Assembly: GCF_039654945.1 (NCBI RefSeq)
Contig: NW_027361696.1
Span: 37,634,001 to 37,698,000, forward strand
Length of the DNA: 64,000 nucleotides
Source of the DNA: Dendrobates tinctorius
Lineage: Eukaryota
Direction of reading: 5' to 3'
Part shown: in pieces, positions 22,326 to 63,975 of the stretch
Position numbering within the stretch: position 1 is the first letter of the stretch
Layout: every line of letters starts with the position of its first letter
Notes under the pieces: model-generated
Databases searched by the model: none
What the model saw: the letters and a program-made list of their open reading frames with translations, nothing else
What the model was told of the DNA's origin: nothing
Program-made: the position numbers and the translations under genes

Positions 22326-23398
22326 ATGGAGAAATTATCAAGACCAGAATCTGTTTCTTCTAACTGTGCCACTGACATAGAGGAAACAGAAGTGATAGTA
22401 TCTGTACAAAACCCTCATACAACTGGGATGGAGGTTGCTGAATAATTGAGATGCTTCTGCACCGTGTTGAGAGGTCCAACCAAGATGCTAAATTGCTTTG
22501 GATTCTGGACCGGGAACTGGTCTTTCATGGTCAGGCTGAGAGAAGACCCGTCCTTTTCTGATGGTGGTCTCATGCATCTGCCAGAACGATGCACATTAGG
22601 AAACTCAGAAGCAATCATTACTTATTCGGACAAGTCAATGAGCGAGAATAGAAGGATGATGGTGGAATATATGGAGGACAACATAACACATCTCTATTGC
22701 AGCTGCCTTCTGCAAAGCAATGTTTTCAAGGACTATTCTAATGTCCTGAAAGAATTCCAAGACAGAAGAAATAAGAAGGCCAAGAAGCATCAGAGAAAGA
22801 GTAACAGGTAAGAGGACAAAGCACTCCACCATTCATTACCTGGATTTTCTAATATCATATATCTGTTCTTGGGACAATTGGGTATCGACCAACTTGATGC
22901 TGACATTAATTTATTGTAATTTTTGTTGCCATCTTCAAATCTTTTAATCTACTGCACAAAATATGAGCCAGTTTTAATTGGGATAAGTTTGGGACAGAAT
23001 ATATTTTATTTCTTTCATTATTATTGAGTCCAATGATATAAAAAATGGGGCCCTTTCTGAAAAAAATCTGATTTTTCAGGCATATTTTCTAAAAATAGTT
23101 ACATTTGACAGTTTTGTCTATTGTTGCATCTCATAGTGATGTAATATCTACATTTTGTCCTTATTTTCCCTCAGATAAAATAATGATTTCCTTGCTGATG
23201 GAGATGACAGAAGAAATGGTGCCATCTGAATTTGAAAACTAATTCTGGATCCGATTTCTATGAAGAGTGCCAATTTTTCCCAAAGCAACTTGTTTATGAA
23301 CACATCAGCATCGGGACTTAGTACCGACAGATGAAACTGTGGACACTTTAATCCTCTGTATATTTTGATCATTTTGTCAAATTTGTTGCTTCAATAAA
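22326..23398 (+). pseudogene. Paralog 1 of the short ZCCHC3/Tx1-ORF1-like gene (pseudogene)
   Basis: ATG 22326 (MEKLSRPESVSSNCAT..). Premature TAA at 22443, where paralog 2 has TAC. The frame continues to 22811 with an eroded knuckle. The TATA region is deleted. Predicted intron 22808-23174, AATAAA at 23393. Confidence 0.82.
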
Positions 23399-26300
23399 AC
23401 TTGAATTTAATCCAGAAATGTCTCTCCCTTGTGTCATGTTTATATTCATCCAAAAGGGAAAAGTTGTTCTCAATGTAAATCAGGCTCCTCCAAATCTGTG
23501 TCTTTTAGGGTTAAAATTGATGGATTTGTATTTCTGCATTATGATAGACTGGGTGCAAATACTCCCACTCAATACTTTTTACAACAATAAAACAAATAAT
23601 GGTTAGATTTTATCTCCTGCATTCTTCTATCTATTTCTTGTATATGAGCTGCTCTGGTCCTCTGTACATGGCAATACACTACATGTGTTCCCAGGTTCTT
23701 CACAAATAAAAATCACAGAGTTGCAGATTCATCTCCAGATCTTTATTATAAGAAAGAATCATTTTTTGTATCTAAAAGCAACATACACATGTGACATTTC
23801 TGTATAATATATACACCCCGCATATCTCTGGGTCGGTTGTGGTAGAACTGGGGTACCCTCCTTGCCGGAATCCAGATTAGAACAAGGCAGAAGAGGTAAA
23901 AAAAAGTACAATAATGCAAAGAGTTAATCCATCAAGTTAGCTGTCCTGTACCCTAAATCTCATTGTGTCAATATCCTGAACCCCAAGTGTCATTGTGCCA
24001 TTATGGGTACAGTACAGTGATGCTCACACTTAAATACTGGATAATGACATAAAGTTTCAGGCTGTTATTATCCTGTACCCCAATTGTCAGCATTTCAGTT
24101 TTCTATACCTCCAATTCTTGTTTTTATCATCGTGTACCCCAAGTTCTAGTGTCATTGTCCAGAACCCCATTTGTCAGTTTCTTTATATTCTGTACCACAA
24201 GTCTCTGCTTCCTCTTTCTCTACTTATTAAAGCCTTTAATATTTCACACATCTATTATGACAGGAAGATATAGAAAAGGAAAAAGAAAGACCAGTCACAC
24301 AGTATAGATAGATTAACCGATATGAGGTAATGATACCAGTTGGAAAAAGATGATGTCATTTTCATTTTATAATTAATACATAAGTCAATACATCAGAAGG
24401 ATGAAGAAAATATTTATACATCATTTATCTGTATTTTAATGTACAGACTGCATAAATCTTAGTCTCCATTGCAATTAGTAAATTATAAGTCATATAATCC
24501 TTGAAGAAACTCAATAAATGTTACTTATTACATAATGAGAATGATGGTGTCGTGATTCTTCCTTGATAAGAAACATGATGTGCCACATGTTAAGTCTGAT
24601 AGCTGTAAATATTCCATTGATTACATTTTTATCCATGTAGCCTATTATTTTGTGGTAAGAAAATAATTGTCAAAGCTCAGTAATGGCAGATATTAGTAGC
24701 CTGACATAAAAGCAGGTACATAGTATATTATCATAAATCGATACAGTTACATGTAAAAACACAACAAAATTGTAGACTGAAACCAGTACTAATTTTACCC
24801 TTGAGTCCATACAAAAAAGGTAATTGTGAAACTCATGGAGTTCATCAGAGTAGCACATCCATATGAAAGAAAATAATTTCTATTTATCACAACAGACTTA
24901 GAATTCAGCTAAAATTGTGGTTTAGCCTTTACACTTGACCCCATCGCGGTTCCCTGGGGTGGAATAAGAGTAGCCAGGACCCCTGGCTCTATAGAGTGTG
25001 CCCTCAGCACCTGATGTATCACATGACATGTGACAATATCCCCTTTGAGATGTGATAGGTCAAGTGTTTAACACAGAGATGCATGTGTGCAAATGTAAGA
25101 CAACAGAGACATCGGTGTGCTACATGGACAATGCAAATTTTTTCTCCTTGTGTACAGTGCTAAAATAGCAATGCTATACCCAGTAGAGGATACTATGTAA
25201 TAAGAAACTATGCTATATATAACAAGAGGAAGTTATATAATATGGGACGGCACTATACATAAAAATAAATGCTACTTAATAAAGCACAGCGGTATATATA
25301 GCAAACTGGAATTGTATATAATTGTTCTTTATGGAAATATCTTTAAGATAAGCATGGATTGGTTATAATGAGGGCTATTAGCGCTACCACCCAGGGCCCA
25401 GATCTCCCATGGGTCCCAGCAATAATGATGATTTGAGGGTGCTAGAGTAGATCATTATGTATTCTGACTAGAGGATGAGTGACAGTAAATTAGGGTGATT
25501 TGAGGGTGGTGGAGAGTAAAGGATTATGTATTGAAGGTGGGGTAGAGCAAAAGATAATGAATTGAGGGTTAGTGGAGAGCAAATGATGAATTGAGGGTGA
25601 AGGAGACCAAATGTTGATGCATTAACTTTGTAAGGTGAGGGACATAAATTATGATCAATTGAGGGTGGGGAAAGCAAATTATGATGAATTGAGAGATAAG
25701 GGTGAGTGAGAGAAAATAATGCTGTTACGGGACCCCTGTGAGTGCCAGGCTCTGAGTAGTACAGGAAATTGCACTAGTTATAAGCCACCCAAGGTGGCAC
25801 CCCTTTATTGGAAAAAAACACTCCTTACCATAAAGATATTTCTATAAAGAACAATTATAAGATGAGCCAACAAATTATTTTTGGGAAATGCTGCTGTAAA
25901 TTCTGGTAGAGAGTGTGAAGGAGAGATTAGTCATCCCCTTTAATAATTGATAAATGTGTAATAATTTAGTATGTATAACAAAATTAGGATTTCATTATCA
26001 AGATTTATTAGGCCAGAGATCATATTAATAGTCAGATAAGTCCTTGATGAAAAGATGGCATATTTCTGAATTTGTGTAGAATCCTGCCCTTGTAAATAGT
26101 TTTTCTGAAAAATATGGATGCCATTCAGGACACAATACAGTGACCTCGTTGTGTCATGTTTCAGGTCTTCTACACAAGATTCATATCTACCGTACTACAC
26201 ATTTAGTGAATGTAATATATATTTAACATTTTTTCTGTCTCACAATGAAAATTAGTACTTAAACCTGGATTATACGTATAAGAAAATAATGATTACACCA

Positions 26301-27416
26301 AACTGGACACACTTGGTAAATAGCCATTATACATCGTACATCACTTATATTGCTTTATGCTTTTTACACATTTTCCTCATAATATTCCCAAGTGTAAGCA
26401 TCATTATCCTGTACCCCAAATTACAGTGTTGTTCAGGACCCCATTTGTCTGTTTCTTTTTATCCTGTGCCCCCAAGTGTCAATGTCATCATTCTCTACTT
26501 ATTAAAGCCTTTACTGTTTCATAAATATACTAAGACAGGGCGATATTGAAAAAGCCGTAGATAGACCACTTATAGAGCATAAATAAATGAACAGATATGA
26601 GATATTGATACAAACTTGAAGCAGATGACATCAATTGTCACTTTCTATGTAATAAATACATTCTTCAGAGGGATAAAGAAGGAGAGAAAATAACATTATT
26701 TTTTCTCTATCGATTATACATAATTTAAGTTCCAGATTAAATATTTGCTAATCATTGCCCTTTAAAAGAACCTGACAGGTTTTGGGCATATTGGTCTGGG
26801 ACACATCTGTTAGTGCACTTGTAGCATAACATTATGGAGGTCACTGTTATTATAATCCAATTGACCTAATAGAATTATCCATAAGAAACAAGAGACACTG
26901 CAGAGGTCACACTTTTGAGGAGCTTTCTAATTCCATCACCAATTTTGCATGAGAAGAGAGGAGCACAAACTGAGGATCCACCCAAGCCAACTGGTTACAC
27001 AGGGCATCTCATATGTTGATGACAGAGTTAACAGCCCCAGGATAAATTACTTGTATGAGGAAGTATGTTAATGAAATGGCTACAAAATAAGTTGACGTTC
27101 CCCATATATGTTTATAATCCTTGTCCAAACTCAACAAATGGCTGTATCCTGTCTCTTCCTTCACAAAAAAACATGTGACATAGGTGGGTAAGTAGATATG
27201 AAATAGAAAATAGGCAAATAAAACTGTGTAGATATTCAGTTAGAGCTGATTGCACGTCACAACAAGTCTGGTAATAGTAAAGAATCCATTGATAATGATT
27301 TTCTTCCTCCAAATTAAAAGCCACGGGGATCATAGAATCATAGAATCATAGAATCGTAGAGTTGGAAGGGACCTCCTGGGCCATCTGGTCCAACCCCCTG
27401 CTCAAAGCAGGATTCG

Positions 27417-30180
27417 CTAAATCATCCCAGTCAGATGTCTGTCCAGCCTCTGTTTGAAGACTTCCATTGAAGGAGAACTCACCACTTCTCGTGGCAGCCT
27501 GTTCCACTCATTGATCACTCTAACTGTCAAAAAGTTTTTTCTAATATCTAATCTGTGTCTCCTCCCATTCAGTTTCATCCCATTGCTTCTAGTCTTTCCT
27601 TGTGCAAATGAGAATAAAGTTGATCCTTCTACAATGTGACAGCCCTTTAGATATTTGTAGACAGCTATTAAGTCTCCTCTCAGTCTTTTCTTTTGCAAAC
27701 TAAACATTCCCAAATCCTGCAACCTTTCCTCATAAGACAGGGTTTGCAGACCGGTCACCATTCTGGTCGCTCTTTTCTGAACTTGCTCCAGTTTGTTGAT
27801 GTCTTTTTTAAAATGTGGTGCACAAAACTGGACACAATATTCCAGATGAGGTCTGACCAAAGAGGAGTAGAGGGAAATAATGACTTCACGTGATCTAGAC
27901 TGTATGCTTCTGTTAATACATCCTAGAATTGCATTTGCCTTTTTTGCTGCTGCATCACACTGTTGACTCATATTCAGTCTGTGATCTATTAGTATACCCA
28001 AGTCTTTTTCACATGTGCTGTCACTTAGCCCTATTCCTCCCATTCTATATATGCTTTTTCCATTTTTATTGCCCAGATGTAGTACTTTGCATTTCTCCCT
28101 GTTAAAAACCATTCTGTTAGTTGCTGCCCACTTCTCCAGTTTATTTAAATCTTTTTGAATCCTCTCTCTCTCTTCTCTAGTATTAGCTATCCCTCCTAGC
28201 TTTGTGTCATCAGCAAATTTAATCAGTTTACCCTCAATTCCTTCATCTAAATCGTTGATAAAGATGTTGAACAATACAGGGCCCAGGACAGAGCCCTGTG
28301 GTACCCCACTTGAGACATTCTTCCAACTGGATGTGCAGCCATTTACGACCACTCTTTGGGTCCGATCACTAAGCCAGTTATGAATCCACCTAACAGTTGC
28401 CTTGTCCATTCCATACTTAGTCATTTTTTCAATAAGGATTGTATGAGAGACTTTGTCAAATGCTTTGCTGAAGTCAAGATATACTATATCTACAGCATTT
28501 CCTTGATCCAACCAATCAGTGATACCGTCATAGAAGGAAATTAAGTTAGTCTGACATGACTTATTAGTTACAAACCCATGCTGACTCTGTTTAATCACTT
28601 CATTCTTATCCAGGTATTGACATACATGTTGTTTAATAATTTGTTCAAAGATCTTTCCTGGTATAGAAGTCAGACTCACCGGCCTATAGTTGCCTGGGTC
28701 CACCTTCTTCCCCTTTTTGAAGATAGGAACAACATTTGCTCTTCTCCAGTCTTCTGGCACTTCTCCTGTTCTCCAAGAATTTTCAAAGATTATAGAGAGG
28801 GGTTCAAAAATTTCTTCTGCTATCTCCTTCAGTACTCTGGGGTGTAATTCATCTGGACCTGGAGACTTGAATTCATTTAGGCTAGCTAAGTGTTTCCTCA
28901 CTATCTTTCTGTTTATAGATATCCTGGATTCTTCTATTCCCTTAATAGGACAGTGAATAACAGTTGATGTTACATTTCCTTTCTGAGAGAAAACAGATGC
29001 AAAATAGGAATTTAAAAGTTCAGCCTTCTCAACATCCTGTCTTACCATTTCATCATTTTCATCCTGTAAAAATCCTATAGCATCTTTGACTTTTCTTTTA
29101 CTTTTGACATATCCCCAAAATCCTTTATTATTGCTTTTGACATCTCTTGCAAGCCTCAATTCATTTTCAGCTTTAGATAATCTGATTTGTGCCCTGCAGG
29201 TTCTGCAGACAGCATTATATTCTTCTTTAGATATGCCTCCCTCTTTCCATTTTATAAACATTTTTTTCTTCCTTTTTAGCATGTGCTTAAGTTCTGTGTT
29301 CATCCATCCTGGTTTCCTTAACTGCTTCCTATTCTTCCCTCTTTTCGGAATTGTTAACAACTGTGCTTTGAGAATTTCATTTTTCAAGATTTCCCATCCT
29401 TCCTGGACATTTTTGTCTTTAAGGATATCCAGCCATTGGATCCCTCCAATTCTCTTTCTGAATCCCTTAAAATCTGCCTTTCTGAAATCTAACCTTGACG
29501 TCTGAGTCTTCACAGGTCTTCCGCCTCTAGTTATCCAAAATTCTAAAATAGCATGGTCGCTACCTCCTAGGGTCCCAGCCACTTTTACCTCCTCAACCAT
29601 TTCCTCCCTGTTTATAAGGATTAGATCCAAGGTAGCAGTTCCCCTTGTTTTCTCCCTTACCTTTTGGAAGATAAAGTTGTCAGCAAGAGAGGATAAGAAT
29701 TTCCTTGACCTGTTAGTTTTGCCTGAGAGAGATTCCCAACAAAAGTCTGGATAGTTGAAATCTCCCATGACAACTATGTCATATTTTTTGGAGAACTTGG
29801 CCATTTGATGCATAAAGAGTTCATCCATAGCTTCAGCTTGCACAGGCGGCCTGTAGTAAATGCCTACAATGGTGTCCTTTCCATTGTTCTGTCCTTGTAT
29901 TCTTACCCAAACAGTTTCCACAGAACTCCCAGTCTCTGAAGCTTCAATCTCTGTGCAGATTTACGCGTTTCTAACATACAATGCGACACCCCCTCCTCGT
30001 TTATCAAGTCTGTTTCTTGCAAATAAGTTGTATCCTTCTAGTCTTGTATTCCAATCATGTGTATTGTCCCACCAAGTTTCAGTGATTCCAATGACATCAT
30101 ATTTCTTTTCCTGTGTTAGTAGTTCCAATTCTCCTTGTTTGTTGCCCATGCTTTGTGCATTAGTACAGAAACATTTTAGT
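27417..30180 (-). pseudogene. CR1 ORF2 (APE endonuclease + reverse transcriptase) with one frameshift near 29961
   Basis: GITETWW and GGGVALYV in 29961-30149; MGDFN, SDH, YLDFSKAFD, GVPQGSVLGP and FADD in 27417-29921. Confidence 0.92.
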
Positions 30181-30328
30181 TTGTGATTGGTTTCTCTTTC
30201 TCCAATATTTTTATTAATTAGATTCTTTCATCTTTGTTCTTCCTTTCCACTTCTAATAGCAGAGTTCTCAATAGCATTTGTCAGGTGTATGGCTTTTTCT
30301 GGTCTTTTGCTTCCCTTCCCATGTTGTT

Positions 30329-31252
30329 CTAGTTTAAACCTCTCCTTACAAGTGTAGCAAGGCGACTTCCAAATACATGCTTTCCAGTCTTAGTAAGGTG
30401 CACCCCATCTCTAGCAAGTAGTCCATCATATAAGTAGTTCACTCCGTGATCCAGAAATCCAAATCGTTGCTGACGGCACCATCGACGTAGCCAGTTGTTC
30501 ACCTGCAGAATCTTATTCCACCTCCTTGTTCCATGGCCATCCACTGGGAGGATGGAAGAGAAGACCACCTGCGCTCCCAGTTCTTTCACTTTCTTGCCTA
30601 AGTCTTCAAAGTCTCTGCAGATGGTTTCCAGGTCGTTTCTTGCAGTGTCATTTGTCCCCACATGTAGTAGCAGGAATGGGTAGTCATCTGTAGGTCTGAA
30701 GAGTCCTGATATCCTGTCAGACACATCTTTAATTTTTGCACCTGTAAGACAGCACATTTCTCTTGAAGTTATATCCGGTCTGCAGATAGCGGCCTCAGTT
30801 CCTCTCAGCAGGGAATCCCCCATGACCACCACTCTCCGTTTCTTCTTCACAACATTTTTCTTTCTCCATCCAGGAGGACTCTGAAGGCGTACAAGGTTGC
30901 TGCTTGTTGGCAAAGTCTTATTCTGATGTATTTCTTCATTGTTTTCCTGCGTGAGAGCCTGGTACTGGTTTCTGAGCAGTATGGGTGCTGACTGCCTCCT
31001 GATCCTCCTGCTTCTCTGGGTCACATGTCTCCATTCCTCTGTTTCTTCAGGTGCACTTTGAATTTCTTCTCTTTCTGTAACATGAAGAGATAATTCTGCT
31101 CTGTCCAAGAACTCTTCACCTTCCTTAATGATCTTCAACGTAGCTAACCTCTCTTCGAGATTTTGCAACTTTTCCTCCAACAGGGACACAAGCTTGCATT
31201 TGTGGCATGTGAAGTTTGGCTTTTCCACTGGTAAGTCTGTGAACATGTAGCA
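30329..31252 (-). CDS. CR1 ORF1 (Zn finger/coiled coil + SGNH esterase-like), slightly 5'-truncated
   Basis: CxxC, GDS, HVGTND and DGVH motifs. Confidence 0.9.
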   Translation of the reverse strand, partial: CYMFTDLPVEKPNFTCHKCKLVSLLEEKLQNLEERLATLKIIKEGEEFLDRAELSLHVTEREEIQSAPEETEEWRHVTQRSRRIRRQSAPILLRNQYQALTQENNEEIHQNKTLPTSSNLVRLQSPPGWRKKNVVKKKRRVVVMGDSLLRGTEAAICRPDITSREMCCLTGAKIKDVSDRISGLFRPTDDYPFLLLHVGTNDTARNDLETICRDFEDLGKKVKELGAQVVFSSILPVDGHGTRRWNKILQVNNWLRRWCRQQRFGFLDHGVNYLYDGLLARDGVHLTKTGKHVFGSRLATLVRRGLN

Positions 31253-32636
31253 AGAAATTGTCAAAACTCAGTAATGTCAGCGATTGTGAAGGAATAAATT
31301 GTTCTGATGAAGAAGCTTGACAGAAAAGCAGGTATTTAACTTTATATTGATATAACCTACAAATCGATACAGTCATAGAGAAAAACAACATGGAAAAGAG
31401 ACAGAAATCAAGCTAATTTTACCTTGAGGTGCATACAAGTGAGATTAATATGAAACACATCAAGTTCTCCAAAGAAACCCATCAATATGAAGAAAATATA
31501 ATCTTTATATCGCAACAAGCTCAGAACTCAGCTGAAATTGTTGGCTAGCCTTTTAATTAGACACCATGGCGGTACCCCTTTATTAAGAAAATTATCACAT
31601 ATTAACATTAAGATTTTTTTCATCAAAAACAAATATAATTACATTTTACAATATTTTGTTGGGAAATACTGCAATAAGTTCAGGTAGTGCATGTGCTGCA
31701 AACCTGGGCCGACCACCTTTCATAATCCCAAAGCTTGAAATGATTTAGTATGTCATTATCAAGAAGAATGATTACACCAGAGACCATAGAAAGATGTGTC
31801 CTTGATAAAACAATGGCAGTTATTAATTTTGATGTTTTAGGTCTTGCATCTTCTACCCAAGATTAATAAATATCTTCCTACCTATTTAATAAATGAATTA
31901 TATATATTACAATTCTGCACTCATGCAAATGAAAATTAGAAGATGTTAGAGAGTAATGACTGCACCAAACTGAGCAACTTTTTAACTATCCATTATAAAT
32001 TCCTGCATAACTTATTGTAATACGCTTTTTACTTATCTTACACATCTATGTTGATTTTCACCTATCAAAAATAAATATTAGCAATATCTCTTACAATATG
32101 ACACAAAGAGGCATGAAACACATCACATAATTAGTTCCCATTTGTATCAGACTATTACTTTTTTATATAAATGATAAAAATTATATTATACATATGAGAG
32201 AAAGAAAAATTTTAAAAATATTTATAATTCTAAATTTAAACAAAATTTATAATTTGTCCCCGTTTCCCTCTCCAGAAACCAGTCAGGTATTGGTTGAATA
32301 GTTTGCCCTGCACTTCTGTATGTAATTATGTAATTGACCTGATAGAATAATGCTCAAAACAAAAGAGACTCTGCAGAGATCACACTTGTCAAGAGCTTTG
32401 TAATTTCATGAGCAACTCAGCATGAGAAGAGACATGAACATCCCCAGGATCCACCCAAGCCAGCTGTAGACACAGAGCATTTCATATGTAGATGACAGGG
32501 TTAATTGTCTGAAAAATAAATGTATCTGAAGCGTGATGTGAAATATATTTAAATAGATGAAAGATCCCCATATGTATTATAATTATTTTTCCAACTCCCT
32601 GATATCATGAATATTATCAGTATCAATCTTTTATTA

Positions 32637-33850
32637 TTGGTGCATACTCAGATTGGTCCAGGGTTACTAGTGGGGTACCACAGGGTTCTGTATTGGGCAA
32701 TCTTTTATTAATGGTGCATACTCAGATTGGGCCAGGGTTACCAGTGGGGTACCACAGGGTTCTGTATTGGGCCCCCTACTATTTAATATATTTATTAATG
32801 ATCCAGTGGATGGCTTACACAGTAAAATATCAGTATTTGCAGATGATACAAAACTATGTAAGGTAGTTAACACAAAGGAGGACAGTTTGCAACTACAGAC
32901 AGATTTGAGTAAATTGGAGAATTGGGCTGAAAAATGGCAAATGAGGTTTAACAGATAAGTGTAAGGTTATGCACATGGGAAGGAGAAACAGATGCTACAA
33001 TTACTTACTAAATGGGAAACTGCTGGGGAATCAGACATGGAAAAAGACTTAGGCATCTTAGTCAATAAGAAGCTAAATTGGAGTGCCCATTGTCAGGCAG
33101 CTGCCACCAAAGCAAATAGGGTCATGGGATGCATTAGGAGAGGTCTGGGGACACAAGAAGAAAACATAATTCTTCCTCTGTACAAATCACTCGTCAGACA
33201 ACACTTGGAGTATTGTGTGCAATTTTGGACACCGGTGCTCAAGAAAGGCATTACTGAACTTGAAAGGGTTCAAAGGCGGGCTACTAAAATGATAAATGGA
33301 GTTGGTTCACTACAATACCCAGAAAGGTTATCAAAATTAGGTCTATTTACTCTAGAAAAGAGAAGACTTAGGGGAGACCTAATATATATGTACAAGTATA
33401 TCAGAGGGCAATACAGAGATCTCTCCAATGAACTGTTTGTACCAAGGACTGTGACAAGAACAAGGGGGCATTCTCTTCGTTTGGAGGAAAGACAATCTCT
33501 GCACCAGCATAGAAGAGGGTTCTTCACGGTAAGAGCAGTGAGGCTCTGGAATTCTCTTCCTGAGGAAGTGGTGATGGCCAACTCACTAAATGAATTTAAG
33601 AAAGGAATGGATGCTTTTCTTGTGAGTAACAGTGTAGAATGTTACAAATAACAGAATATTATAGGTAGATGGTAGCTTAGGGGAAGGAATTTTTTCCCTA
33701 TGGAGAAAATTGGCTTCTACTCTGTGGGTTTTTTGCCTTCCCCAGGATCAACAATGCAGATCAACAATGCAGAATAGCTGCACTAAAAATAGGCTGAACT
33801 AGATGGACATAAGGTCTTCCTTCAGCCTTCAAAACTAGGCTACTATGTTA
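32637..33850 (+). mobile_element. 5'-truncated CR1-clade LINE of a different subfamily, decayed
   Basis: GVPQGSVLGPLLFNIFIND..FADD..LEYCVQFW..LEKRRLRGDL, frameshift near 32955, and a tandem duplication at the 5' junction. Confidence 0.9.
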
Positions 33851-35857: not shown

Positions 35858-36344
35858 TCTGCACTGTGTATCGGAATCTTTTTTTTTACAACTGATAGAG
35901 GCAAAGCAAATTATTTTTATTTGAATTATTGCAGATATTGGGAACAATTTTATATTTTTGTAGATATATCTATACTTTTTTAATAATAGATCATTTGATG
36001 AACAAATTGCCTAAATATCGATTCACAATAGATATAAATGCAGATTGATTACTGTAATTAAATTAGTTTTTGCCATGTATACACCAGTAAATGATTACTC
36101 AGTAAATAGCAGGAAAGATAAATGTGATAAATAAAAAAAAATAAAAGATACATGACAGATAGATAGAAAAATCCTGACATATGACCATGGAGAGAGATTT
36201 GGAGGGAACCTTTTTTCTGAAAAGTTTTGTGTGAGTTCTTCACCTAATGAATAGACTTTTGCTATGTAAATCATATTTACTCTACCTGATACCCAAGATG
36301 GTGGAGACAATAACAGGAAACCATTCAGCCCCTACTCAGTCTGA

Positions 36345-36378
36345 TATAAAGTGGGTTCTTTGCGCTGCCCTCATACAT
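36345..36378 (+). promoter_or_regulatory. TATA box and initiator of paralog 2
   Basis: TATAAA at 36345 and CTCATAC 28 bp downstream; identical spacing in paralog 3. Confidence 0.7.
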
Positions 36379-36437
36379 TCTGGAAAAAACCCTTAAAAAA
36401 TCTTCTGCTACGCTTTAATCTTTGGAAGGAATAGATC

Positions 36438-36947
36438 ATGGATGAATCGTCAAGACCAGAAACTATCTCCTCTAACTGTGCCACTAACATAGAGGAAATA
36501 AAAGTGATAATATCAGTACGAAACCCTCATACACCAAGGAAGGAGGTTGCTGAATACTTGAGACGCTTCTGCATCGTGTTGAAAGGTCCCACCAAGATCT
36601 TAAATAATTTAGGCTTCTGGACTGGAAACTGGTCTGTCATGGTCAGACTGAGACAAGACCAGTACTTACCTTTTGGTGGTCTCATGCATTTACCAGAAAG
36701 ATGCACAATAGGAGACTCAGAAGCAATAATTTCTTATTCAGACAACTCATTGAGTGAGCATAGAAGGATGACAATGGAATACAAGGAGGACAGCATGACA
36801 AATCTCTGCGGCAGCTGCGTTGTGCAAGACTATATTTTCAAGGACTATCCTGGTGATATCAAGGAAATCCAGGACAGGACATCTAAAGCCCCCGTTACAC
36901 ACAGCAAGATAGCTAGCAATATCGCTGAAACGTCACAGGTTTTGTGA
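36438..36947 (+). CDS. Paralog 2 of the short ZCCHC3/Tx1-ORF1-like gene; C-terminus replaced by MITE sequence (probably disabled)
   Basis: RNPHTP..EVAEYLRRFCIVLKGPTKI.N.LGFWTGNWSVMVRLR..GGLMHLP. Native end at 37247-37280, predicted intron 37277-37642, AATAAA at 37808. Confidence 0.78.
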   Translation: MDESSRPETISSNCATNIEEIKVIISVRNPHTPRKEVAEYLRRFCIVLKGPTKILNNLGFWTGNWSVMVRLRQDQYLPFGGLMHLPERCTIGDSEAIISYSDNSLSEHRRMTMEYKEDSMTNLCGSCVVQDYIFKDYPGDIKEIQDRTSKAPVTHSKIASNIAETSQVL

Positions 36948-37243
36948 CGCAGCAGCGATATTGCTAGCGATATCGCTATGTCTGATACTTACCTGTGACC
37001 GGCCCCCCCGCTGGTTATCGCTGATCGCGCAAGAACGTCCTGGGCGCCGACAAGTGGCGCGTGGATGCGGGCGGGATGACGTCAGGATCGCCGCGTTTGA
37101 CAGGTAAGTAGCGACCCCCGATCGCTGCTATGTTGCTGTTGAGATCTGCCTGTGTGGCAGCTCACAAGCGACCACTTAGCGATGCACCAGCGATCCATAT
37201 CATTGTCTGGATCGCTGGTGCATGGCTTAGTGTAACGGTACCC
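36887..37243. mobile_element. Harbinger-type MITE inserted in the paralog 2 coding region
   Basis: TAA TSD at 36884 and 37244. Removing it restores TSKKAKKQKKSKR*. Confidence 0.9.
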
Positions 37244-38004
37244 TAAGAAAGCCAAGAAGCAGAAGAAGAGTAAAAGGTAAGAGGACAATGTCCTCCACCA
37301 TTCATTGCAAGGATCTCCAGATATCATGTATCTGTTCCTGAGTCAACTATGTAACAATGCACTTGATGTTAAACTTTTATATATTTTGAGTTTTCTTGGA
37401 AGCTACAATCCTTATAATCCACTGTGCACAATATAATGACTCAGAACTGATCTGTATGAGCTTGGGGATGAACATATCTTGTTACAATCACTTATATTGT
37501 GAGCCATCAGATCTAAAACTGGGCAATTTCAAAAAAATCAAGGCTGTCCAGAACATTTTACAAAATTATATATTTCATAATATTTTGCCTTTTGCTGCAT
37601 TTCATAGTAGTGTAATATGTACATTTCTTTTTTGTTCTACAGATAAATTATTTTTTTGCTGGTGGAGATAGCAGAAGGATCGGTGACTCCTAATTTGAGC
37701 CCCATATAATTCTGGATCCAGTTACTAAAGATTTCTTCCCATTTTGATGACACTGACGATACTTGGATCTTTGGGTATTTTCATTATTTTGTGACATTTG
37801 TTATTTCAATAAAACTTTAATTTCAAATAAAAATATGTCTTCCTTATGTCATGTGTCATCTTCATATTCTTCAAAAAGGTACGTTGTAATCATTGTTGGT
37901 CTGGTTCCTCTAAGCCTATCTGTTTTTTAAGTTATGATTGACTTTGGGTACAATGACTGGGGTGCTGAGACTTCAAGGTCATTATGTGCCTAAAGCTCCC
38001 ATCT

Positions 38005-42746: not shown

Positions 42747-43152
42747 AGGGGTTTTTCACATAGCGATATCGCTAGCAATATCGCTAAAGCATCACCGATT
42801 TTGTGACGCAGCAGCGATATTGCTAGCGATATCGCTATGTGTGATACTTACCTCTGACCGGCTCCCCCGCTGTCTGTCGCTGATCATGCGAGATCGTGCA
42901 GCTCCATTTCTCATCGGGCGCTTCCCGCTGGACTTCCTGCTGGCACCGACGAGCGGCTCGTGGACGCGGGCGGGAGGACGTCAGGATCGCCGCGTCTGAA
43001 AGGTAAGTAGCGACCGCTGCTGCGTCGCTATGTCGCTTTGAGATCTGCCTGTGTGGCAGCTCACTAGCAACCATTTAGCGATGCACCAGCGATCCTCACC
43101 GGGTCATATCGTGGTCAGGATCGCTGGTGCATTGCTAAATGTAAAGGGGGCT
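42747..43152. mobile_element. Harbinger-type MITE abutting the previous one
   Basis: Shares the TAA at 42744-42746; same family as 19535-19934 and 59351-59755. Confidence 0.8.
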
Positions 43153-49300: not shown

Positions 49301-49765
49301 TGGCTCTGTACACTGCGAGGACAATGTAGTGCTCTGAGTGAATGTACCAGCAGAATCATTCATCAGCGGCTGTGCATCAGTGCACTCCATGTCAGATTCA
49401 TCTTGGCCTGGGTAATTCACCATTTGACTTGATAATCCAGGCATGGTATGTGAAAACAGCTCCATGGAGTAATCAGTGCTTTTACTTTTTATAACTGAAG
49501 AAGAGGAGGCGATAGAGCTGGAGACTGAGTCAGAAATGTAAGACAAAACTTTTTCCTGATGCTCTGGCTTTAAAAGCGGTTTGCCAACTCCTAGAAAACT
49601 AAGCATTCGAGGCCTTATGTAGCCAGACGATGACGCAGGCTCAACACCTCCTGCATTCGGTCCTATTTTGCTCTTGCCACTACCATCAGATCCACCACCA
49701 ACACCATCATTACCAGCTGCCAACCCCCGCCCAATTCCACGGCCTCTTCCACCAGCCTTCCTCAT
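46331..49765 (-). CDS. hAT transposase (BED zinc finger, DDE RNase H fold, hATC dimerisation domain), ~1144 aa
   Basis: SAVWHFF..CEKC..HLTSMH, HLTTDAWSS, VVSDNGRN, CLAH, TRWNST, SVLSERVFS. Likely start is MRKAGG at 49765. Confidence 0.96.
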   Translation of the reverse strand: MRKAGGRGRGIGRGLAAGNDGVGGGSDGSGKSKIGPNAGGVEPASSSGYIRPRMLSFLGVGKPLLKPEHQEKVLSYISDSVSSSIASSSSVIKSKSTDYSMELFSHTMPGLSSQMVNYPGQDESDMECTDAQPLMNDSAGTFTQSTTLSSQCTEPDSDPDETQVPLPAHYTTIHGDTEEGAHDIEEEVMDDPVVDPDWHPLGEEGAASNSSDEEHPQQTSTSQQLLSGRPGALQRQVPNIKRVAGQLVQRVKRSQRARPQNVCQSRKSAVWHFFDQNPHDQAKVICEKCAKTFSRGKNLKNLNTSCMLRHLTSMHLQAWTQHQTSSATCATDHNEGSQQRYIVSPTVSPPVSTAANVEVSLQGHNSQGIPLLYQRKTDSRPSERTPTPSPSSTLSQSALSTATSTICSSQVQLTLPDTMSRSRKYSVSHPRTLGLNAHIAKLISFEMMPFRLVESTAFRELMAYAVPCYDLPSRHFFSRKAIPALHHHVKDRIVHVLKQSVSGKVHLTTDAWSSRHGQGRYVSITAHWVNVVDAGSTGDSGGGTVLPSPRYRKQLAVGVRPSSSSSSRSESSSTERSRTSTPSAAATVAHDVSPYRAASGKRQQAVLQMICLGNRHTAEVLAEYLKRQTESWLGSVHLEAGKVVSDNGRNFVAAIALSKLSHIPCLAHTLNLVVQCFLKNYPELTALIQKVRRLCVHIRRSPVHSVRMQKLQRLLHLPNHRLIIDIATRWNSTLHMVERLCEQRQAIMHLWEDTRPGTLRADMELTGVQWSKLKDLCKVLQCFKECTRLVSADDAILSMSIPLMRLLMQTLTHLKEQASAANVDEEEEEEGILDDIQPLSAQGPLLDEVEEEEEEEDDGDDYLGEEDASCGASENVGVARSGTGFVRDWRDVDLPESAPPPSTHSASLTPGTLAHMSDYALQILKRDPRIAKMMNDDDYWLASILDPRYKGKLQYIMPQENHDLILANKQATLVNRLLEAFPAHSSGDGSHTSRTGRGQLGRGVRGAHSRSGVGDRGFTTMLWTDFSNTAHTTGNTASMESDKRQQLSTMVTNYFSSHIDVLPHRFDYWAAKLDTWPELAQYALQELACPAASVLSERVFSAAGSILTEKRTRLSTQNVDDLTFIKMNHAWVSKDFVPPSPDDT

Positions 49766-49841
49766 TTTTGGTAGAAATGTAGACAAAATCCAACAAACTA
49801 TATAGTAATGTAAAACAAGGTACAAGGTGTCTATAGGACAG

Positions 49842-51140
49842 GGGAGATTTTGAATTTCTGCAGACACTTGTGGACACTGGACACTTTTGGATTGTGTGAG
49901 GCCCACTGATATCTGAGCGCTATGTCACCGGCTCGATGGCACAGCTGTGACAAAAGTGACGAGATGATAAGGGAGATTTTGAATTTCTGCACACACTTGT
50001 GGACACTGGACACTTTTGGATTGTGTGAGGCCCAATGAATATCTGAGCGCTATGTGACAGGCTCGATGGCACAGCTGTGACCAAAGTGACTAGAGGATAA
50101 GGGAGATTTTGAATTTCTGCACACACTTGTGGACACTGGACACTTTTGGATTGTGTGAGGCCCACTGATATCTGAGCGCTATGTCACAGGCTCGATGGCA
50201 CAGCTGTGACAATAGTGACGAGAGGATAAGGGAGATTTTGAATTTCTGCACACACTTGTGGACACTGGACACTTTTGGATTGTGTGAGGCCCACTGATAT
50301 CTGAGCGCTATGTCACAGGCTCGATGGCACAGCTGTGACAAAAGTGACGAGAGGATAAGGGAGATTTTGAATTTCTGCACACACTTGTGGACACTGGACA
50401 CTTTTGGATTGTGTGAGGCCCACTGATATCTGAGCGCTATGTCACAGGCTCGATGGCACAGCTGTGACAAAAGTGACGAGAGGATAAGGGAGATTTTGAA
50501 TTTCTGCACACACATGTGGACACTGGACACTTTTGGATTGTGTGAGGCCCAATGAATATCTGAGCACTATGTGACAGGCTCGATGGCACAGCTGTGACCA
50601 AAGTGACGAGAGGATAAGGGAGATTTTGAATTTCTGCACACATTTGTGGACACTGGACACTTTTGGATTGTGTGAGGCCCACTGATATCTGAGTGCTATG
50701 TCACAGGCTCGATGGCACAGCTGTGACAAAAGTGACGAGAGGATAAGGGAGATTTTGAATTTCTGCACACACTTGTGGACACTGGACACTTTTGGATTGT
50801 GTGAGGCCCACTGATATCTGAGCGCTATGTCACAGGCTCGATGGCACAGCTGTGACAAAAGTGAAGAGAGGATAAGGGAGATTTTGAATTTCTGCACACA
50901 CTTGTGGACACTGGACACTTTTGGATTGTGTGAGGCCCACTGATATCTGAGCGCTATGTCACAGGCTCGATGGCACAGCTGTGACAAAAGTGACGAGAGG
51001 ATAAGGGAGGTTTTGAATTTCTGCACACACTTGTGGACACTGGACACTTTTGGATTGTGTGAGGCCCACTGATATCTGAGCGCTATGTCACAGGCTCGAT
51101 GGCACAGCTGTGACAAAAGTGACTAGAGGATAAGGGAGAT
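49842..51140. repeat. 129/130-bp tandem array (~10 units) upstream of the transposase
   Basis: GGGAGATTTTGAATTTCTGCACACACTTGTGGACACTGG units. Confidence 0.95.
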
Positions 51141-53796: not shown

Positions 53797-56051
53797 TAGA
53801 GTTGAGCGATACCGTCCGATACTTCAAAGTATCGGATCGGAATGGATCGGCCGATCTTAAAAAAAAGTATCGGTATCGCCGATTCCGATACCGGAAGTCC
53901 CATTCAAGTCTATGGGACTTCCGGTATCGGAATAAGAAAAACCCTGTTTTTGCCTTGTACAGCCTCTCTGGGTCTGTACGGGCCTTTCGGGGGGCTGTGC
54001 CGGCCTGCCAGGGGGTCTGTGCAGGCTCCGGTGGTCTGTGCCGGCCTGCCGGGGGGCTGTGCCGGCCTGCCGGGGGGGCTGTGCAGGCTCCGGGGGGCTG
54101 TGCCGGCCTGCCGGGGGGCTGTGCCGGCCTGCCAGTGGTCTGTGCAGTCTCCGGTGGGCTGTGCCGGCCTGCCGGGGGGCTGTGCCGGCCTGCCGGTGGT
54201 CTGTGCAGGCTCCGGTGGGCTGTGCCGGCCTGCCGGGGGGCTGTGCCGACCTGCCGGGGGTCTGTGCAGGCTTCGGGGGTCTGTGCAGGCATCGTCCGAT
54301 GGGACTACAAGTCCCATCGGGCGATGCCTGCTACCATGACAGTGATTGACACATTAGCCAATGATGGGACAGTAGTAGTCCCATCATCCGGCTAATGTGT
54401 TGAATGTAAAAAAATTACATGCTACATTCATACTACATACTACATACATGCTACATTCATACTACATATATACTACATGCAACATACATACTACATATAT
54501 ACTACATGCATGCAACATGCATACTACATATATACTACATGCAACATACATACTACATATATACTACATGCATGCAACATGCATACTACATATATACTAC
54601 ATGCTACATACATACTACACATATGCTACATATATACTACATGCATGCTACATACATACTGCATGCTACATACATACTGCATGCTACATACATACTACAT
54701 GCTACATACATACTACATATATGCTACATACATACTACATATATACTACATGCATGCTACATACATACTGCATGCTACATACATACTACATGCTACATAC
54801 ATACCACATATATACTACATACATACTACATGCATGCTACATGCTACATACATACCACATACATACTACATACATACTACATACATACTACATGCATGCT
54901 ACATACATACTACATGCTACATACATACTACATATATACTACATGCATGCTACATACATACTACATGCTACATACATGCTACATACATACTACATGCTAC
55001 ATACATACCACATACATACTACATATATACTACATGCATGCTACATACATACTGCATGCTACATGCATGCTACATACATACTACATACATACTACATGCT
55101 ACATACATACCACATATATACTACATACATACTACATACAATACATTCATACAATACATACATAGACATACAGTACATATAACATAGAGTAACATACTTA
55201 CCAATACTTGTCACATTGTTCCCCGAAGCCATTGTCTTTTACGGAATAAATATTAACATAACAAACCACAAAAATACTCACCCACGATCCGAAGCAGTCC
55301 ACGAGTGTGTCCCACGACGATCTTGGGTAGAGAACTGCAGCATCAGCTGATGCTGCCGTTCTCTACGGGCTGCAGGAATCCAATGACGGAAGGTAGGTAT
55401 CCTTCCGCATTGTATTCCTCCGCCACTTAAAAAAAAAAAAGTCCCTAGTCTCACTTTATGCCATTGCTGTGTGGGAATTTCCAACGCATGTATGTAGTAT
55501 TTTTTTTTTTTTTAACATTTAACACATTAGCCGGATGATGGGACTACTACTGTCCCATCATTGGCTAATGTGTCAATCACTGTCATGGTAGCAGGCATCG
55601 CCAGATGGGACTTATAGTCCCATCGGACGATGCTTGCACAGACACCCGGACATCAGCACAGCCCCCCGGCAGGCCGGCACAGCCCCCCGGCAGGCCGGTA
55701 CAGACCCCCACAGGGTGCACAGACCACCGGCAGGCCGGCACAGCCCCCCGGCAGGCCGGTACAGACCCCGGGCAGTCCACACAGCCCCCCGGCAGGCCGG
55801 TACAGACCCCGGGCAGTCCACACAGCCCCCCGGCAGGCCGGCAGAGACCCCCGGAAGGCCCAAAATGACGGCGCATCATGATGCGCACACACCGCGCATC
55901 ATGATGACGTCAGGCTGTCAATCAACTTTGAACTTCCGATTCCGATGCCGACTTCCGATATTGAAAAAATATCGGAAGTCGGTATCGGAATTCCGATACA
56001 GCAAGTATCGGCCGATACCCGATACTTGCGGTATCGGAATGCTCAACACTA
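53797..56051. mobile_element. Second copy of the palindromic non-autonomous hAT element, inner right arm deleted
   Basis: Same TIRs, TSD GCCACAAG on both sides. Jumps from the centre (~55487) to the end of the right microsatellite. Confidence 0.93.
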
Positions 56052-59350: not shown

Positions 59351-59755
59351 AGGGGGTTTTACACTAAGCAATATCGCTAGCAATATCGCTAAAACGTCAC
59401 TGGTTTTGTGACGTTATAGCGATATTGCTAGCGATATCGCTATGTGTGATACTTACCAGCGACCGGCTCCCCCGCTGCTCATCGCTGATCGCGCGAGAAT
59501 GTCCGGCTCCATTTCTCGTCGGGCGCTTCCTGCTGGGCTTCCTGCTGTGACGACGAGCGACGCGTGGACGCGGGCGGGAGGACGCAGGATCGCTGTGTGT
59601 GAATGGTAAGTATCGTGCGCTGCGTCGCTGCTGCATCGCTGTGAGATCTTTCTGTATGAAAGCTCACTAGCGATCATTTAGCGATGCACCAGCGATCCTG
59701 ACCGGGTCGGATCGCTGGTTGGATCGCTGGTGCATCGCTAAATGTAAAAGGGCCT
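59351..59755. mobile_element. Harbinger-type MITE
   Basis: TTA TSD; empty paralogous site at ~4818 (ACCTTAGCC). Confidence 0.85.
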
Positions 59756-60461
59756 TTAGCCAACAACCTTTCATATAATCAATAAAAGTGCAATAAGTTA
59801 GTTTGTCGAAAGACATTAATATGTCATTATCAAGAATTATTTCACCAGAGATGATAGTAAGAATGTCAGATGTGTCCTTGATAAAAGTTGACATTTATTA
59901 ACTTGTGTAGGACCCTATATGGTTAAATAGCTTTACTAGAAAACATGGACCCCATCCAAGAGAAAATAAAGTGAGCCGATTGTGTTGTTTCAGGCATTGT
60001 CTTTTCTACTCAAGATTAATAGCTCTCATCCTACCCATTTAGTGAATGTATCTTATATCTAATAATTTTGCACACATGCAATTGAAAATTAGAAGTTAAA
60101 CTTGGATTATACGTATATGAGAGAATTATGACTTTACCAAACTGGACAAACTTGTTAAATAGCCATTATAAATCATTACATAACTTGTTTTGTTATATAC
60201 TTTTTACCTATTTTACCCGTCTATATTGATTTTTATGTATCAAATATCAATATTAGCAAATTCTATGACAATATGAGAAAAACAGACTTAAAACAGAACA
60301 TTTAATTTGTTCCCTATTTGTATCACACGATCACTTAAATGTAAAAAATAATATGTATAATACACATGAGAGGAAGAGAGTAAAATATATATTTATAACT
60401 CAAATCCTAAATAAATTTTACATATTTTCATCATTTTCCACTCCATAAACCAGTCAGTTAA

Positions 60462-60536
<75 letters not shown>
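60462..60536. repeat. (AAT)n(ATT)n self-complementary microsatellite
   Basis: Direct reading. Confidence 0.95.
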
Positions 60537-60673
60537 GACACTTTTACTATTATCCAAATGACTTAACATTGAGGCACAATAGATTCTGCAGAGGTCTCAC
60601 TTGCCCTGATCCTTTTAATCTCTCCAGAAACTCAGCATGAGGAAAGATTAGCATATACCCAGGATCCACCTAA

Positions 60674-61499
60674 AGGTACTGTCACACTTAGCGATGTACC
60701 AGCGATCCCGACCAGCGATATGACGCGGTCAGGATCGCTGGTACATCGCTAAGTGGTCGCTAGTGAGCTGCCACATAGGCAGATCTCACTAGCGACATCG
60801 CTGGGGACGGGGATCGCTACTTACCTGTCACACCAGGCGATCCTGCGTCCTCCCGCCCGGCTCCACGCGTCGCTCATCCTCACAGCAGGAAGCGCCACAG
60901 GAAGCAGACGACGAGAAACAGTCCTGAACGTTCTTGCGCGATCAGCGATAACCAGCGGGGGAGCCGGTCGTAGGTAAGTATCAGACACAGAGATATCGCT
61001 AGCAATATCGCTATAACGTCACTAGTTATAGCGATATTGCTAGCAATATCTCTTAGTGTGACATGCCCTTTAGGCTGGAGTCACACATAGCGACTCACCA
61101 GCGATCCTGACAACGATATCAATGTGTCAGGATCACTGGTGAATCGCTATGTGATCGCTGGTGAGCTGTCAAACAGACGGCTTCACCAGCGATCAGCACA
61201 GCAGCGCCGAGCGCCCGGCGTCGCTGTGCACGTTAGTAACCAGCGCGCTGATGCAGGAAGCTGGTAACTAATGTACACATCGGGTATCTAAGGGACGTAT
61301 GCCCCTTGCATACCCGATGTGTATGTTAGTTACCAGCTGATCACTGGTCTCCCGCCTGTCACACGCAGCGATGCGTGCTGGCCAGCGGGAGACCAGCGAC
61401 CAAAAAATAGTCCTGGCCTTTCCTGCAGCGATCAGCGATACCAGCAGGGGGGCCGGTCGCTGATCGCTGTCACACACAGCACTATGTGTGATGGGGCCT
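60674..61499. mobile_element. Two abutting Harbinger-type MITEs (60674-61069 and 61073-61499)
   Basis: TAA/TTA trinucleotides at 60671, 61070 and 61500, with GTCACAC/GTGTGAC-type TIRs. Confidence 0.78.
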
Positions 61500-62819: not shown

Positions 62820-62853
62820 TATAAAGGAGGGTCTTCTCTCTACCCTCATACAT
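62820..62853 (+). promoter_or_regulatory. TATA box and initiator of paralog 3
   Basis: TATAAA at 62820 and CTCATAC 28 bp downstream; conserved with paralog 2. Confidence 0.72.
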
Positions 62854-62923
62854 TCTCCTAATGAACATCTTCCTGGATTCTTCTACTTCATATCCTGCAG
62901 CTACAATCAGAAGAAATAAGATA

Positions 62924-63803
62924 ATGGAGAAGTCTACAACACCTGAATCCCTTTCCACCAACTGCCCAGCTAATACTGATGAAATTGAAATAATTGTAAC
63001 CATGCGAAACCCACAAACACCAGAGAAGGAGATTGCTGAAGACCTAGGAAAGCGCTGCACTGTTTTGAAAGGTCCCACCAAGGTCTTCAATACTTTTGGA
63101 CTTTGGACTGGGAATTGGTCTTTCCTGGTCAGACTGAGAAAAGATGATTCCTCATTTGATGGACTTTGGCATCTACCAGACAGATGCACATTGGGAAACT
63201 CAGAAGCCATAATTTCTAACATGGCTGATTTATTAGAGGACGAGAATCGCAAGAAAAAATATGAACCTTTCTGCTACAGCTGCTTAATGGAAGGCCATGA
63301 ATTTGGGGACTGTCCTGACGATCTGGAAGACCTGGTGATTAGAGAAGCCAAGAAGCTTCTAAAGAAGATGAGTAAAAGGTAAGAGGACAATACACGCCAC
63401 AATCCATCACTAGGGTCTTCACACCTTGCATACATCTGTTTTTGGGACAATTGGGTGACAATCATCTTGATGTCAGACTTTTATTTATTGTGATTTTTGT
63501 AGCAAGCTTGAAAACTTAGAATCTACTGCACACAATATGAACCAGGATTAACCAGGATGAGTTTGGGGCAGAATATATCTTATTACTTTCAATACTATTG
63601 AGACCAATAATATCTAAAATGAGACCATTTCCAAAAACTTGGTGTTTTCCTGTGTATTTTACAAAAATAGGTACATTTGACAATGTTTTGCCTATTGTTT
63701 AATTTCATTGTGGTGTAATATTTACATTTTATCCTTATCTTCCCACAGAAAAAATAAAAAGATCCTTGCTGGTGGAGATGACAGAAGAACTGGTGGCAAC
63801 TGA
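62924..63803 (+). CDS. Paralog 3, apparently intact short ZCCHC3/Tx1-ORF1-like protein with one CCHC knuckle. Exon 1 62924-63378, predicted exon 2 63749-63803; unspliced stop at 63382
   Basis: IIVTMRNPQTPEKEIAEDLGKRCTVLKGPTKV.NTFGLWTGNWSFLVRLR..DGLWHLP..LG, then CYSCLMEGHEFGDC (CX2CX4HX4C). AG|GTAAGA donor and pyrimidine-tract CAG acceptor. An in-frame upstream ATG exists at 62861. Confidence 0.82.
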
Positions 63804-63969
63804 ATTTTGAAAACTAATTCTGCATCCGATCTGTATTTAGAGTCTCTGCCAGTTTTACCTAAAGCAACAAGATTGAACAAATCGGCAGCTGGACTTTGTG
63901 CTGTGGAATGAAACCGAAGACACTTTAATCCTTTGTATATTTTGATAATTTTGTAAAATGTATTACTTC

Positions 63970-63975
63970 AATAAA
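63970..63975 (+). terminator. Polyadenylation signal of paralog 3
   Basis: TTCAATAAAAC context is conserved at 23393 and 37808. Confidence 0.7.

Follow-up and report, generated by a model that had tools for sequence, protein, structure and literature searches.

Introduction

The mini-genes described here are best viewed against two groups of proteins, the ORF1 proteins of long interspersed nuclear elements (LINEs) and the host protein ZCCHC3. Products of open reading frame (ORF) 1 that are of 'type I' in the classification of Khazina and Weichenrieder combine RNA recognition motif (RRM)-like domains with CCHC zinc knuckles, as summarised in PMC5203782. ZCCHC3 is a vertebrate nucleic-acid co-sensor that restricts LINE-1 (PMC10351740, PMC9580041) and HIV-1 (PMC10351740, PMC9580041, PMC10879702). 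In the human protein the middle fold, which comprises both RNA-binding domains (RBDs), binds the RNA of the retroviral long terminal repeat, and the knuckles bind the nucleocapsid (NC) part of Gag (PMC10879702). Vertebrate host genes that derive from LINE ORF1 are rare; the standard example is L1TD1, a mammalian gene domesticated from L1 ORF1p (PMC11925450), and the reported co-options of L1 are few (PMC12129022). Here we analyse a 64,000-nucleotide (nt) stretch of the genome of the frog Dendrobates tinctorius (GCF_039654945.1, NW_027361696.1:37,634,001-37,698,000), referred to as the window, to which all coordinates refer unless another contig is named. It carries three small ZCCHC3-like genes (copies 1, 2 and 3). 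We consider it probable, with room for considerable doubt, that these mini-genes were recruited from ORF1 of an L1/Tx1-type LINE and make up a small host gene cluster confined to a few frog lineages.

Results

Relationship of the mini-genes to LINE ORF1

An exhaustive phmmer search with the copy 3 protein against 1.8 billion representative proteins produced 98 matches. The closest database relative is XP_075696976.1 of Rhinoderma darwinii (LOC142662650; P0001), a protein of 282 residues with 50% identity (E 4e-64). LINE ORF1 proteins are also among the matches, for instance the frog protein P0006 (E 2e-20) and P0030 (E 5e-8), and alignment reveals that the motifs N-P, WTG-W, V-R-L and H-L-P are common to the mini-genes and LINE ORF1. 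A word-based homolog search found nothing with copy 3 alone and recovered only P0001 and P0007 when supplied with an alignment of the mini-gene clade. Beyond the window, we recovered just two members of this clade from the 1.8 billion representative proteins.

The genomic context of the full-length relatives is that of a LINE. Proteins with RBD1, RBD2 and CCHC knuckles are encoded ~40-51 nt upstream of ORF2s that specify an apurinic endonuclease (APE) and a reverse transcriptase (RT), with or without a zf-RVT domain, in contigs L002-L006. Two proteins of this layout are P0030, which lies 51 nt before an ORF2 of 1141 residues with Exo_endo_phos, RVT_1 and zf-RVT domains (Pfam), and P0057, which lies 44 nt before an APE+RT ORF. 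Using tblastn, we observed that Pelodytes (L005) has a tandem array in which ORFs of the P0006 type and APE+RT ORFs alternate, that in Rhinoderma (L006) a P0004-like ORF1 ends ~40 nt before a full-length ORF2 and that in Mantella (L002) an RT lies downstream of the ORF1 P0026. The gene model of P0026, an 'ORF1-RT fusion' that spans 11.7 kb, is ambiguous on its own; tblastn resolves it into ORF1 followed by RT. GenBank and RefSeq list these frog ORF1s as 'uncharacterized protein' or 'ZCCHC3-like'.

In a maximum-likelihood (ML) tree, copies 1-3, both halves of P0001 and P0007 make up one clade (support 99/93) that is nested inside the anuran ORF1 clade (90/92). Within it the three window copies are mutually closest (100/99), which implies that they were duplicated, or homogenised, after the Rhinoderma lineage had split off. 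The ORF1 breakpoint can be recognised on the 5' side: in alignments, the in-frame translation of the Rhinoderma 5' untranslated region (UTR) matches the C-terminal end of RBD1 ('...ICRRYWE') and the start codon of the mini-genes aligns with an internal ORF1 methionine ('RRYWE-M-VK'). On the 3' side, the surviving knuckle corresponds to knuckle 2, and Rhinoderma keeps the 'DCPKR' end of knuckle 3. Descent of the mini-genes from the ORF1 of an L1/Tx1-type LINE is thus supported by alignment, tree and the context of the relatives.

The LINE arrays deserve a description of their own. In Pelodytes ibericus (L005:5031-22820), full-length L1/Tx1-type LINEs are arranged head-to-tail with a period of ~6.4 kb, and in R. 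darwinii (L006:1-58851) at least nine ORF2 copies that belong to two diverged LINE subfamilies occupy 59 kb. Annotation of such arrays sometimes merges several ORF1 copies into one model; P0002, for example, spans 38 kb.

Domain composition and predicted fold

The Pfam domain RBD_ZCCHC3_2nd (PF23058) was detected in three out of three copies (55-68 bits; gathering score 27), a match far beyond chance (E 1e-14 for copy 1 and 7e-19 for copy 2). The first RNA-binding domain, PF23057, had no Pfam match in any copy; what is left of RBD1 is a remnant of ~12 relic C-terminal codons that sits in the 5' UTR. The triple knuckle of ZCCHC3 is reduced as well: a linker stands in place of knuckle 1, and copy 3 has one intact knuckle, copies 1 and 2 none. 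An AlphaFold2 (AF2) model of copy 3 built on 38 homologs has a mean predicted local distance difference test (pLDDT) score of 83, rising to ~94 over residues 20-100, and predicts a layout of RBD, linker helix, knuckle and Lys/Arg-rich C-terminal helix. When this model was compared with the Protein Data Bank (PDB) by Foldseek, the top matches were all RRM domains (E ~0.03, probability 0.99), and an exhaustive VIA search of the PDB also placed RRM domains at the top (Z 6-7, root mean square deviation 2.6-3.3 Å over 70-75 residues). These scores are middling, but the match list is uniformly RRM, and the assignment of an RRM-like module therefore holds. A single-sequence AF2 model of copy 3 was discarded (pLDDT 38), and a sequence search of the PDB gave only spurious repeat-protein matches and weak knuckle matches.

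An earlier sequence-only reading of this stretch had identified the genes as ZCCHC3-like and related to retrotransposon ORF1, an identity that is borne out by PF23058, the ORF1-ORF2 contexts, the tree and the breakpoint alignment. The same reading gave each protein one RRM-like module and one knuckle: the module is upheld by the AF2 model and its PDB matches, and the knuckle is intact in copy 3 only.

Organization of the cluster

The window is AT-rich and packed with vertebrate-type transposons, and the closest protein relatives of its sequences are from frogs throughout. With the proteins of copies 2 and 3 as tblastn queries, the window yielded three loci and no more, each on the + strand (Table 1), as had been proposed from the sequence alone. 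Homology between the copies (blastn) extends more than 1 kb upstream of the ORF and continues through the intron-like segment and the 3' region. The duplicated unit measures several kb and includes flanks, promoter, intron and 3' UTR; DNA identity among the three units is 72-82%, and only transposon insertions break the homology. The copies are therefore segmental tandem duplicates. Around all three start codons, position -3 is A and position +4 is G. A donor, AG/GTAAGAGGACA (the slash marks the end of exon 1), is predicted in phase 2 in copies 1, 2 and 3 and opens a predicted terminal intron of ~370 bp that splits the last codon and is followed by a short second exon and AATAAA. The exon 2 of copies 1 and 2 contributes one base that completes the codon, and then TAA. 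There is no A-run 3' of AATAAA in any of the three copies and no target-site duplication at the ends of the duplicated units. Searching the window by tblastn with two ORF2 queries, we found no L1/Tx1-type ORF2 adjoining any copy; the sole RT match is CR1-type, on the minus strand at 28236-29069. The earlier observations that ORF2 and poly(A) tail are missing, that two of the copies (2 and 3) possess a TATA box and that all share an intron-like segment and AATAAA are accordingly confirmed.

Table 1. Features of the mini-gene cluster and of other elements in the window
Feature	Position	Strand	Remarks
Start codons	copy 1 22326; copy 2 36438; copy 3 62924	+	
Exon 1 end	copy 1 22807; copy 2 37276; copy 3 63378	+	predicted from sequence
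Exon 2 start	copy 1 23175; copy 2 37643; copy 3 63749	+	predicted from sequence
AATAAA	copy 1 23393-23398; copy 2 37808-37813; copy 3 63970-63975	+	
Copy 1	22326-23398	+	exon 1 22326-22807, intron 22808-23174; exon 2, starting at 23175, finishes an AGA codon before TAA
Deletion junction, copy 1	22268-22290	+	~160 bp gone (= copy 2 36236-36397, TATA box included); from blastn blocks and promoter alignment
In-frame TAA, codon 40 of copy 1	22443-22445	+	copy 2 has TAC there
Copy 2	36438-37813	+	exon 1 36438-36886 + 37247-37276, intron 37277-37642, exon 2 from 37643
TATAAA, copy 2	36345-36350	+	inside CTGATATAAA, kept in copy 3, Rhinoderma and L007
MITE-like insertion, Lys-rich coding tail of copy 2	36887-37243 (357 bp)		14-nt terminal inverted repeats
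Other copies of that MITE family	19543-19927, 42756-42857, 59548-59762, 60701-61022		
TATAAA, copy 3	62820-62825	+	promoter alignment
Exon 1, copy 3	62924-63378	+	151 codons + 2 nt, open, strong Kozak context (A -3, G +4)
RRM-like RBD_ZCCHC3_2nd, copy 3	62996-63208	+	Pfam E 5e-16
CCHC zinc knuckle, copy 3	63272-63313	+	C-x2-C-x4-H-x4-C; aligns with second of three ORF1 knuckles; weak zf-CCHC_4 match
Predicted phase-2 intron, copy 3	63379-63748	+	GT...AG; donor motif also in copies 1 and 2 and Rhinoderma
Coding part of exon 2, copy 3	63749-63803	+	TAA of copies 1 and 2 lost, 17 extra residues
CR1-type LINE between copies 1 and 2	27417-31264	-	834-residue APE+RT ORF2, 311-residue esterase-type (GDSL/OSK-like) ORF1
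RT fragment	32992-33651		only other RT ORF of the window besides the CR1-type LINE
hAT transposase ORF between copies 2 and 3	46331-49906	-	1191 residues, open; zf-BED and hAT dimerisation domain

The earlier reading was silent on damage, and here it has to be corrected for two of the copies. Copy 1 is dead, having acquired a nonsense codon and lost its promoter. Copy 2 is damaged: it retains a TATA box and an open frame, its knuckle is degenerate (C-x2-C-x4-Y-x4-Y) and its coding tail is interrupted by a miniature inverted-repeat transposable element (MITE) flanked by a TAA target-site duplication (36884-36886 and 37244-37246). The last 21 residues of the ORF are therefore transposon-derived, and the residues of this tail match many other sites of the window. 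The MITE family has GTTACAC...GTGTAAC termini and, with its TAA duplication, is PIF/Harbinger-like by target site. Only copy 3 has an intact knuckle; copies 1 and 2 are without the His and the last Cys, and since both read KDY where copy 3 reads KDC, the ligand loss is older than their separation. Site patterns reveal a mosaic. Copy 1 groups with copy 2 in exon 1 (46-48 sites versus 14-19) and with copy 3 in the intron and the 3' UTR (61 and 38 sites, respectively, versus 7-36), a switch characteristic of tandem families that undergo gene conversion or unequal crossing-over. The mosaic was compared over 22326-23420, 36438-37835 and 62924-63995, and copy 1 is nearest to copy 3 in exon 2 too.

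No damage was seen in copy 3, whose predicted spliced product has 169 residues. The cluster is therefore one intact gene accompanied by two decaying copies, and the expanded host family of the sequence-only reading is to be qualified: the tandem arrangement and the conserved promoter fit the behaviour of host genes, whereas 'expanded' overstates a family with one intact gene out of three and two other members. An upstream ATG at 62861, chosen by the ORF finder and giving a reading of 173 residues, was rejected as the start of copy 3; it is AAG in the DNA of a close relative, the matching Rhinoderma stretch has no in-frame ATG and L007, a further contig introduced below, has only a GTG, picked by the gene caller. 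By alignment, the stretch around 62861 is a relic of RBD1 coding sequence. In copy 3 (62899 region), in the Rhinoderma contig L001 (~9975) and in L007 (~404), the conserved 5' UTR has a pyrimidine tract that ends in CAG or TAG ~25-30 nt upstream of the ATG; it could be the acceptor for an unseen upstream exon or, equally, a remnant of RBD1 coding sequence. Public assemblies gave no record of the copy 3 ORF when searched for its exact sequence.

Conservation in other frogs

A second relative of the mini-genes is carried by L007, a genomic contig from another sample. The CTGATATAAA box, the 5' UTR and the Kozak context are common to the window copies, Rhinoderma and L007. Rhinoderma also matches the exact donor motif and GCTGGTGGAGAT in exon 2, and the donor of L007 is merely similar to that of the window copies. 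These shared derived features point to a single origin before the species split.

The Rhinoderma gene has peculiarities. Its RBD2 is tandemly duplicated internally (L001:10001-10849), with a ratio of non-synonymous to synonymous substitution rates (dN/dS) of 0.18 between the two copies; its stop codon lies ~10 nt before the conserved donor; and its exon-2 region (L001:11200-11390) contains an expanded GGTGGAGAT (Gly-Gly-Asp) repeat. With its pair of RBD2s, the protein might regain a two-lobed fold resembling that of RBD1 and RBD2.

Purifying selection or decay?

Is copy 3 a maintained gene or has it simply not been hit yet? Between species the dN/dS of the RBD is 0.17-0.41 and not near 1, the value that the earlier reading had named as a warning; the part behind the RBD has 0.4-0.9. 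For a closer comparison we used a public DNA run of a close relative, whose contigs, 93-97% identical, cover copy 3. The ORF of copy 3 is open in these contigs and all four zinc ligands are unchanged. Over codons 1-93 the proportions of non-synonymous and synonymous differences are pN 0.009 and pS 0.062, over codons 94-151 they are pN 0.099 and pS 0.059, and noncoding divergence in the region is ~0.04, five further differences standing outside these counts, some changes being clustered and the contigs being possibly paralogous. The pN of codons 94-151 is above noncoding divergence (Fisher p ~0.01). In a neutral simulation, only 4-17% of replicates retain an open copy 3 frame at 10-20% divergence. 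We favour the interpretation that the RBD is constrained by purifying selection and that the C-terminal third, in which purifying selection was not found, evolves fast.

The most serious competitor is that the whole cluster is a decaying relic of an ORF1-derived gene, once functional or never so, in which all copies drift and copy 3 has not yet been struck. Its adherents could cite the nonsense codon and promoter deletion of copy 1, the MITE in copy 2, the knuckle ligands lost from both, an RBD dN/dS of 0.47 between these two copies and the high ratios behind the RBD; moreover, 4-17% of the neutral replicates still have an open frame. Set against this are the low pN of the copy 3 RBD relative to the close relative, below both pS and noncoding divergence, the low RBD ratios between species, the conservation of TATA box, 5' UTR, Kozak context and donor across three taxa and the CCHC ligands kept in copy 3, the close relative and Rhinoderma. 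On balance we regard drift of all copies as unlikely, if a possibility to be taken seriously.

A different parent can also be envisaged. The mini-genes might have descended not directly from an active LINE, but from an already domesticated, ZCCHC3-like host paralog that lost its N-terminal region, RBD1 and two knuckles. Several frog relatives are indeed named 'ZCCHC3' or 'ZCCHC3-like', such as the 196-residue 'Novel protein' of X. tropicalis (NP_001297036.1 / CAJ82497.1); the anuran clade is an unresolved polytomy in the ML tree, and the nearest sister, P0016 of Dendropsophus (85/69), is outside the set examined for ORF2 context. However, the full-length anuran relatives whose context was examined, from Pelodytes, Rhinoderma and Mantella, all precede an ORF2, and many of them form near-identical multi-copy clusters, which makes a host paralog as the parent improbable in our estimation. 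Finally, it is highly improbable that the copies belong to a mobile element, be it a non-autonomous retroelement with ORF1 only or another transposon that carries the fragment: their closest full-length relatives are LINE ORF1s, but the copies are in tandem and in the same orientation with several kb of common flanks, contain an intron, are devoid of poly(A) tail, unit-end target-site duplication and ORF2, conserve promoter and UTR between species and have only two relatives in protein libraries.

Other elements in the window

Unrelated transposons separate the mini-genes (Table 1). The CR1-type LINE that lies between copies 1 and 2 may have been inserted recently. Adjoining the hAT ORF, at 50090-51116, is a tandem repeat (period ~132 bp) that reads as a repeated ORF. 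At 1421-2895 and 54397-55187 there are a tandem repeat with a 130-bp period, visible as periodic weak tblastn matches, and a long TA/CA-rich low-complexity tract that yields overlapping ORFs in which Tyr, Thr and His abound.

Discussion

From these comparisons the birth of the mini-genes can be reconstructed. An internal piece of ORF1, consisting of the last RBD1 codons, RBD2 and the zinc knuckles, became a gene and gained a predicted TATA promoter of its own, a predicted intron at its end and a poly(A) signal. After the split from Rhinoderma, tandem duplication, or homogenisation, was followed by gene conversion and by birth-and-death turnover of the copies. The protein encoded by copy 3, with its RRM-like domain, CCHC knuckle and Lys/Arg-rich helical tail, would bind RNA. 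By analogy with ZCCHC3, its likeliest targets may be retroelement or viral RNA, or the ribonucleoproteins that contain it, and it could act either by sequestering these targets or as a competitor of the ORF1 protein that the parent LINE encodes. The innate-immune or anti-transposon role suggested by the earlier reading, for example through dominant-negative mimicry of ORF1p, is to be regarded as a hypothesis.

What are the implications of half an ORF1 protein for the host? A more specific version of the model holds that copy 3 and its orthologs represent a separate domestication, in frogs, of half of ORF1p, whose product would be a decoy or a poison subunit directed at the LINE family that it came from, with a constant RBD and with a knuckle and tail that adapt in an arms race. 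Parent-type LINEs still exist as full-length tandem arrays in frogs, and behind the RBD non-synonymous change exceeds noncoding divergence. We offer this version as a speculation that is quite unlikely to be correct.

Several observations weigh against recruitment from a LINE and against a role in RNA binding. The tree taken by itself fits a LINE parent and a domesticated ZCCHC3-like paralog alike, and we identified no bona fide frog ortholog of ZCCHC3. Promoter, splice and poly(A) sites of copies 1-3 are predictions from conserved sequence; a search of public sequencing runs found the locus in DNA contigs of the close relative and in no RNA run, a negative that carries no information on expression itself. 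With two of three copies damaged, the cluster may be dying. A BTG-family gene lies upstream of the Rhinoderma relative, and the 64-kb window alone contains no match to it. The knuckle, being degenerate in copies 1 and 2 and in L007, is dispensable within the clade. The copy 3 product is mildly acidic (isoelectric point 5.8), as is its knuckle region, which is atypical for a strong nucleic-acid binder. Additionally, the RNA-binding cleft of ZCCHC3 has been described across the whole middle fold, of which the mini-protein keeps half.

With recruitment from a LINE as the preferred interpretation, the locus shows such an event in detail, from the ORF1 breakpoint and the internal methionine that became the start codon to the new promoter and intron, and it also records tandem duplication, gene conversion and the decay of copies. 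Our literature search brought up no account of where ZCCHC3 came from in evolution or of the frog mini-genes. A practical consequence concerns annotation, since many frog entries that databases call 'ZCCHC3-like' or 'uncharacterized protein' represent the ORF1 of a LINE array. Should copy 3 prove to be expressed and to act on LINE or viral RNA, it would provide a minimal, tractable model of ZCCHC3-type restriction that was born from a transposon's own protein.

How do the mini-genes compare with known systems? Their RBD2 and knuckle are homologous to those of L1/Tx1-type ORF1p. Unlike the latter, they have neither RBD1 nor a downstream ORF2, possess at most one knuckle and, within the window, are not dispersed, being arranged in tandem at one locus with their own predicted TATA promoter and terminal intron. 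With ZCCHC3 they share the RBD_ZCCHC3_2nd domain and a CCHC knuckle, and binding of retroelement RNA may be a reasonable analogy. ZCCHC3, however, is a protein of ~400 residues with a disordered N-terminal region, both RBDs and three knuckles, whereas the mini-proteins have 150-170 residues, one RBD and none or one knuckle, and they group with frog LINE ORF1s. XP_075696976.1 of Rhinoderma is alike in start context, TATA box, 5' UTR, donor, 'NWS' and 'RCTLG' signatures, a single intact knuckle and a basic tail; it differs by the doubled RBD2, by its stop just before the donor and by being a single gene in 20 kb rather than a cluster. L1TD1 is comparable in concept, as a LINE ORF1-derived host gene that still deals with LINE ribonucleoproteins, but it is large, stems from a Transposase_22-type ORF1p, belongs to another lineage and has no sequence relationship with the frog genes.

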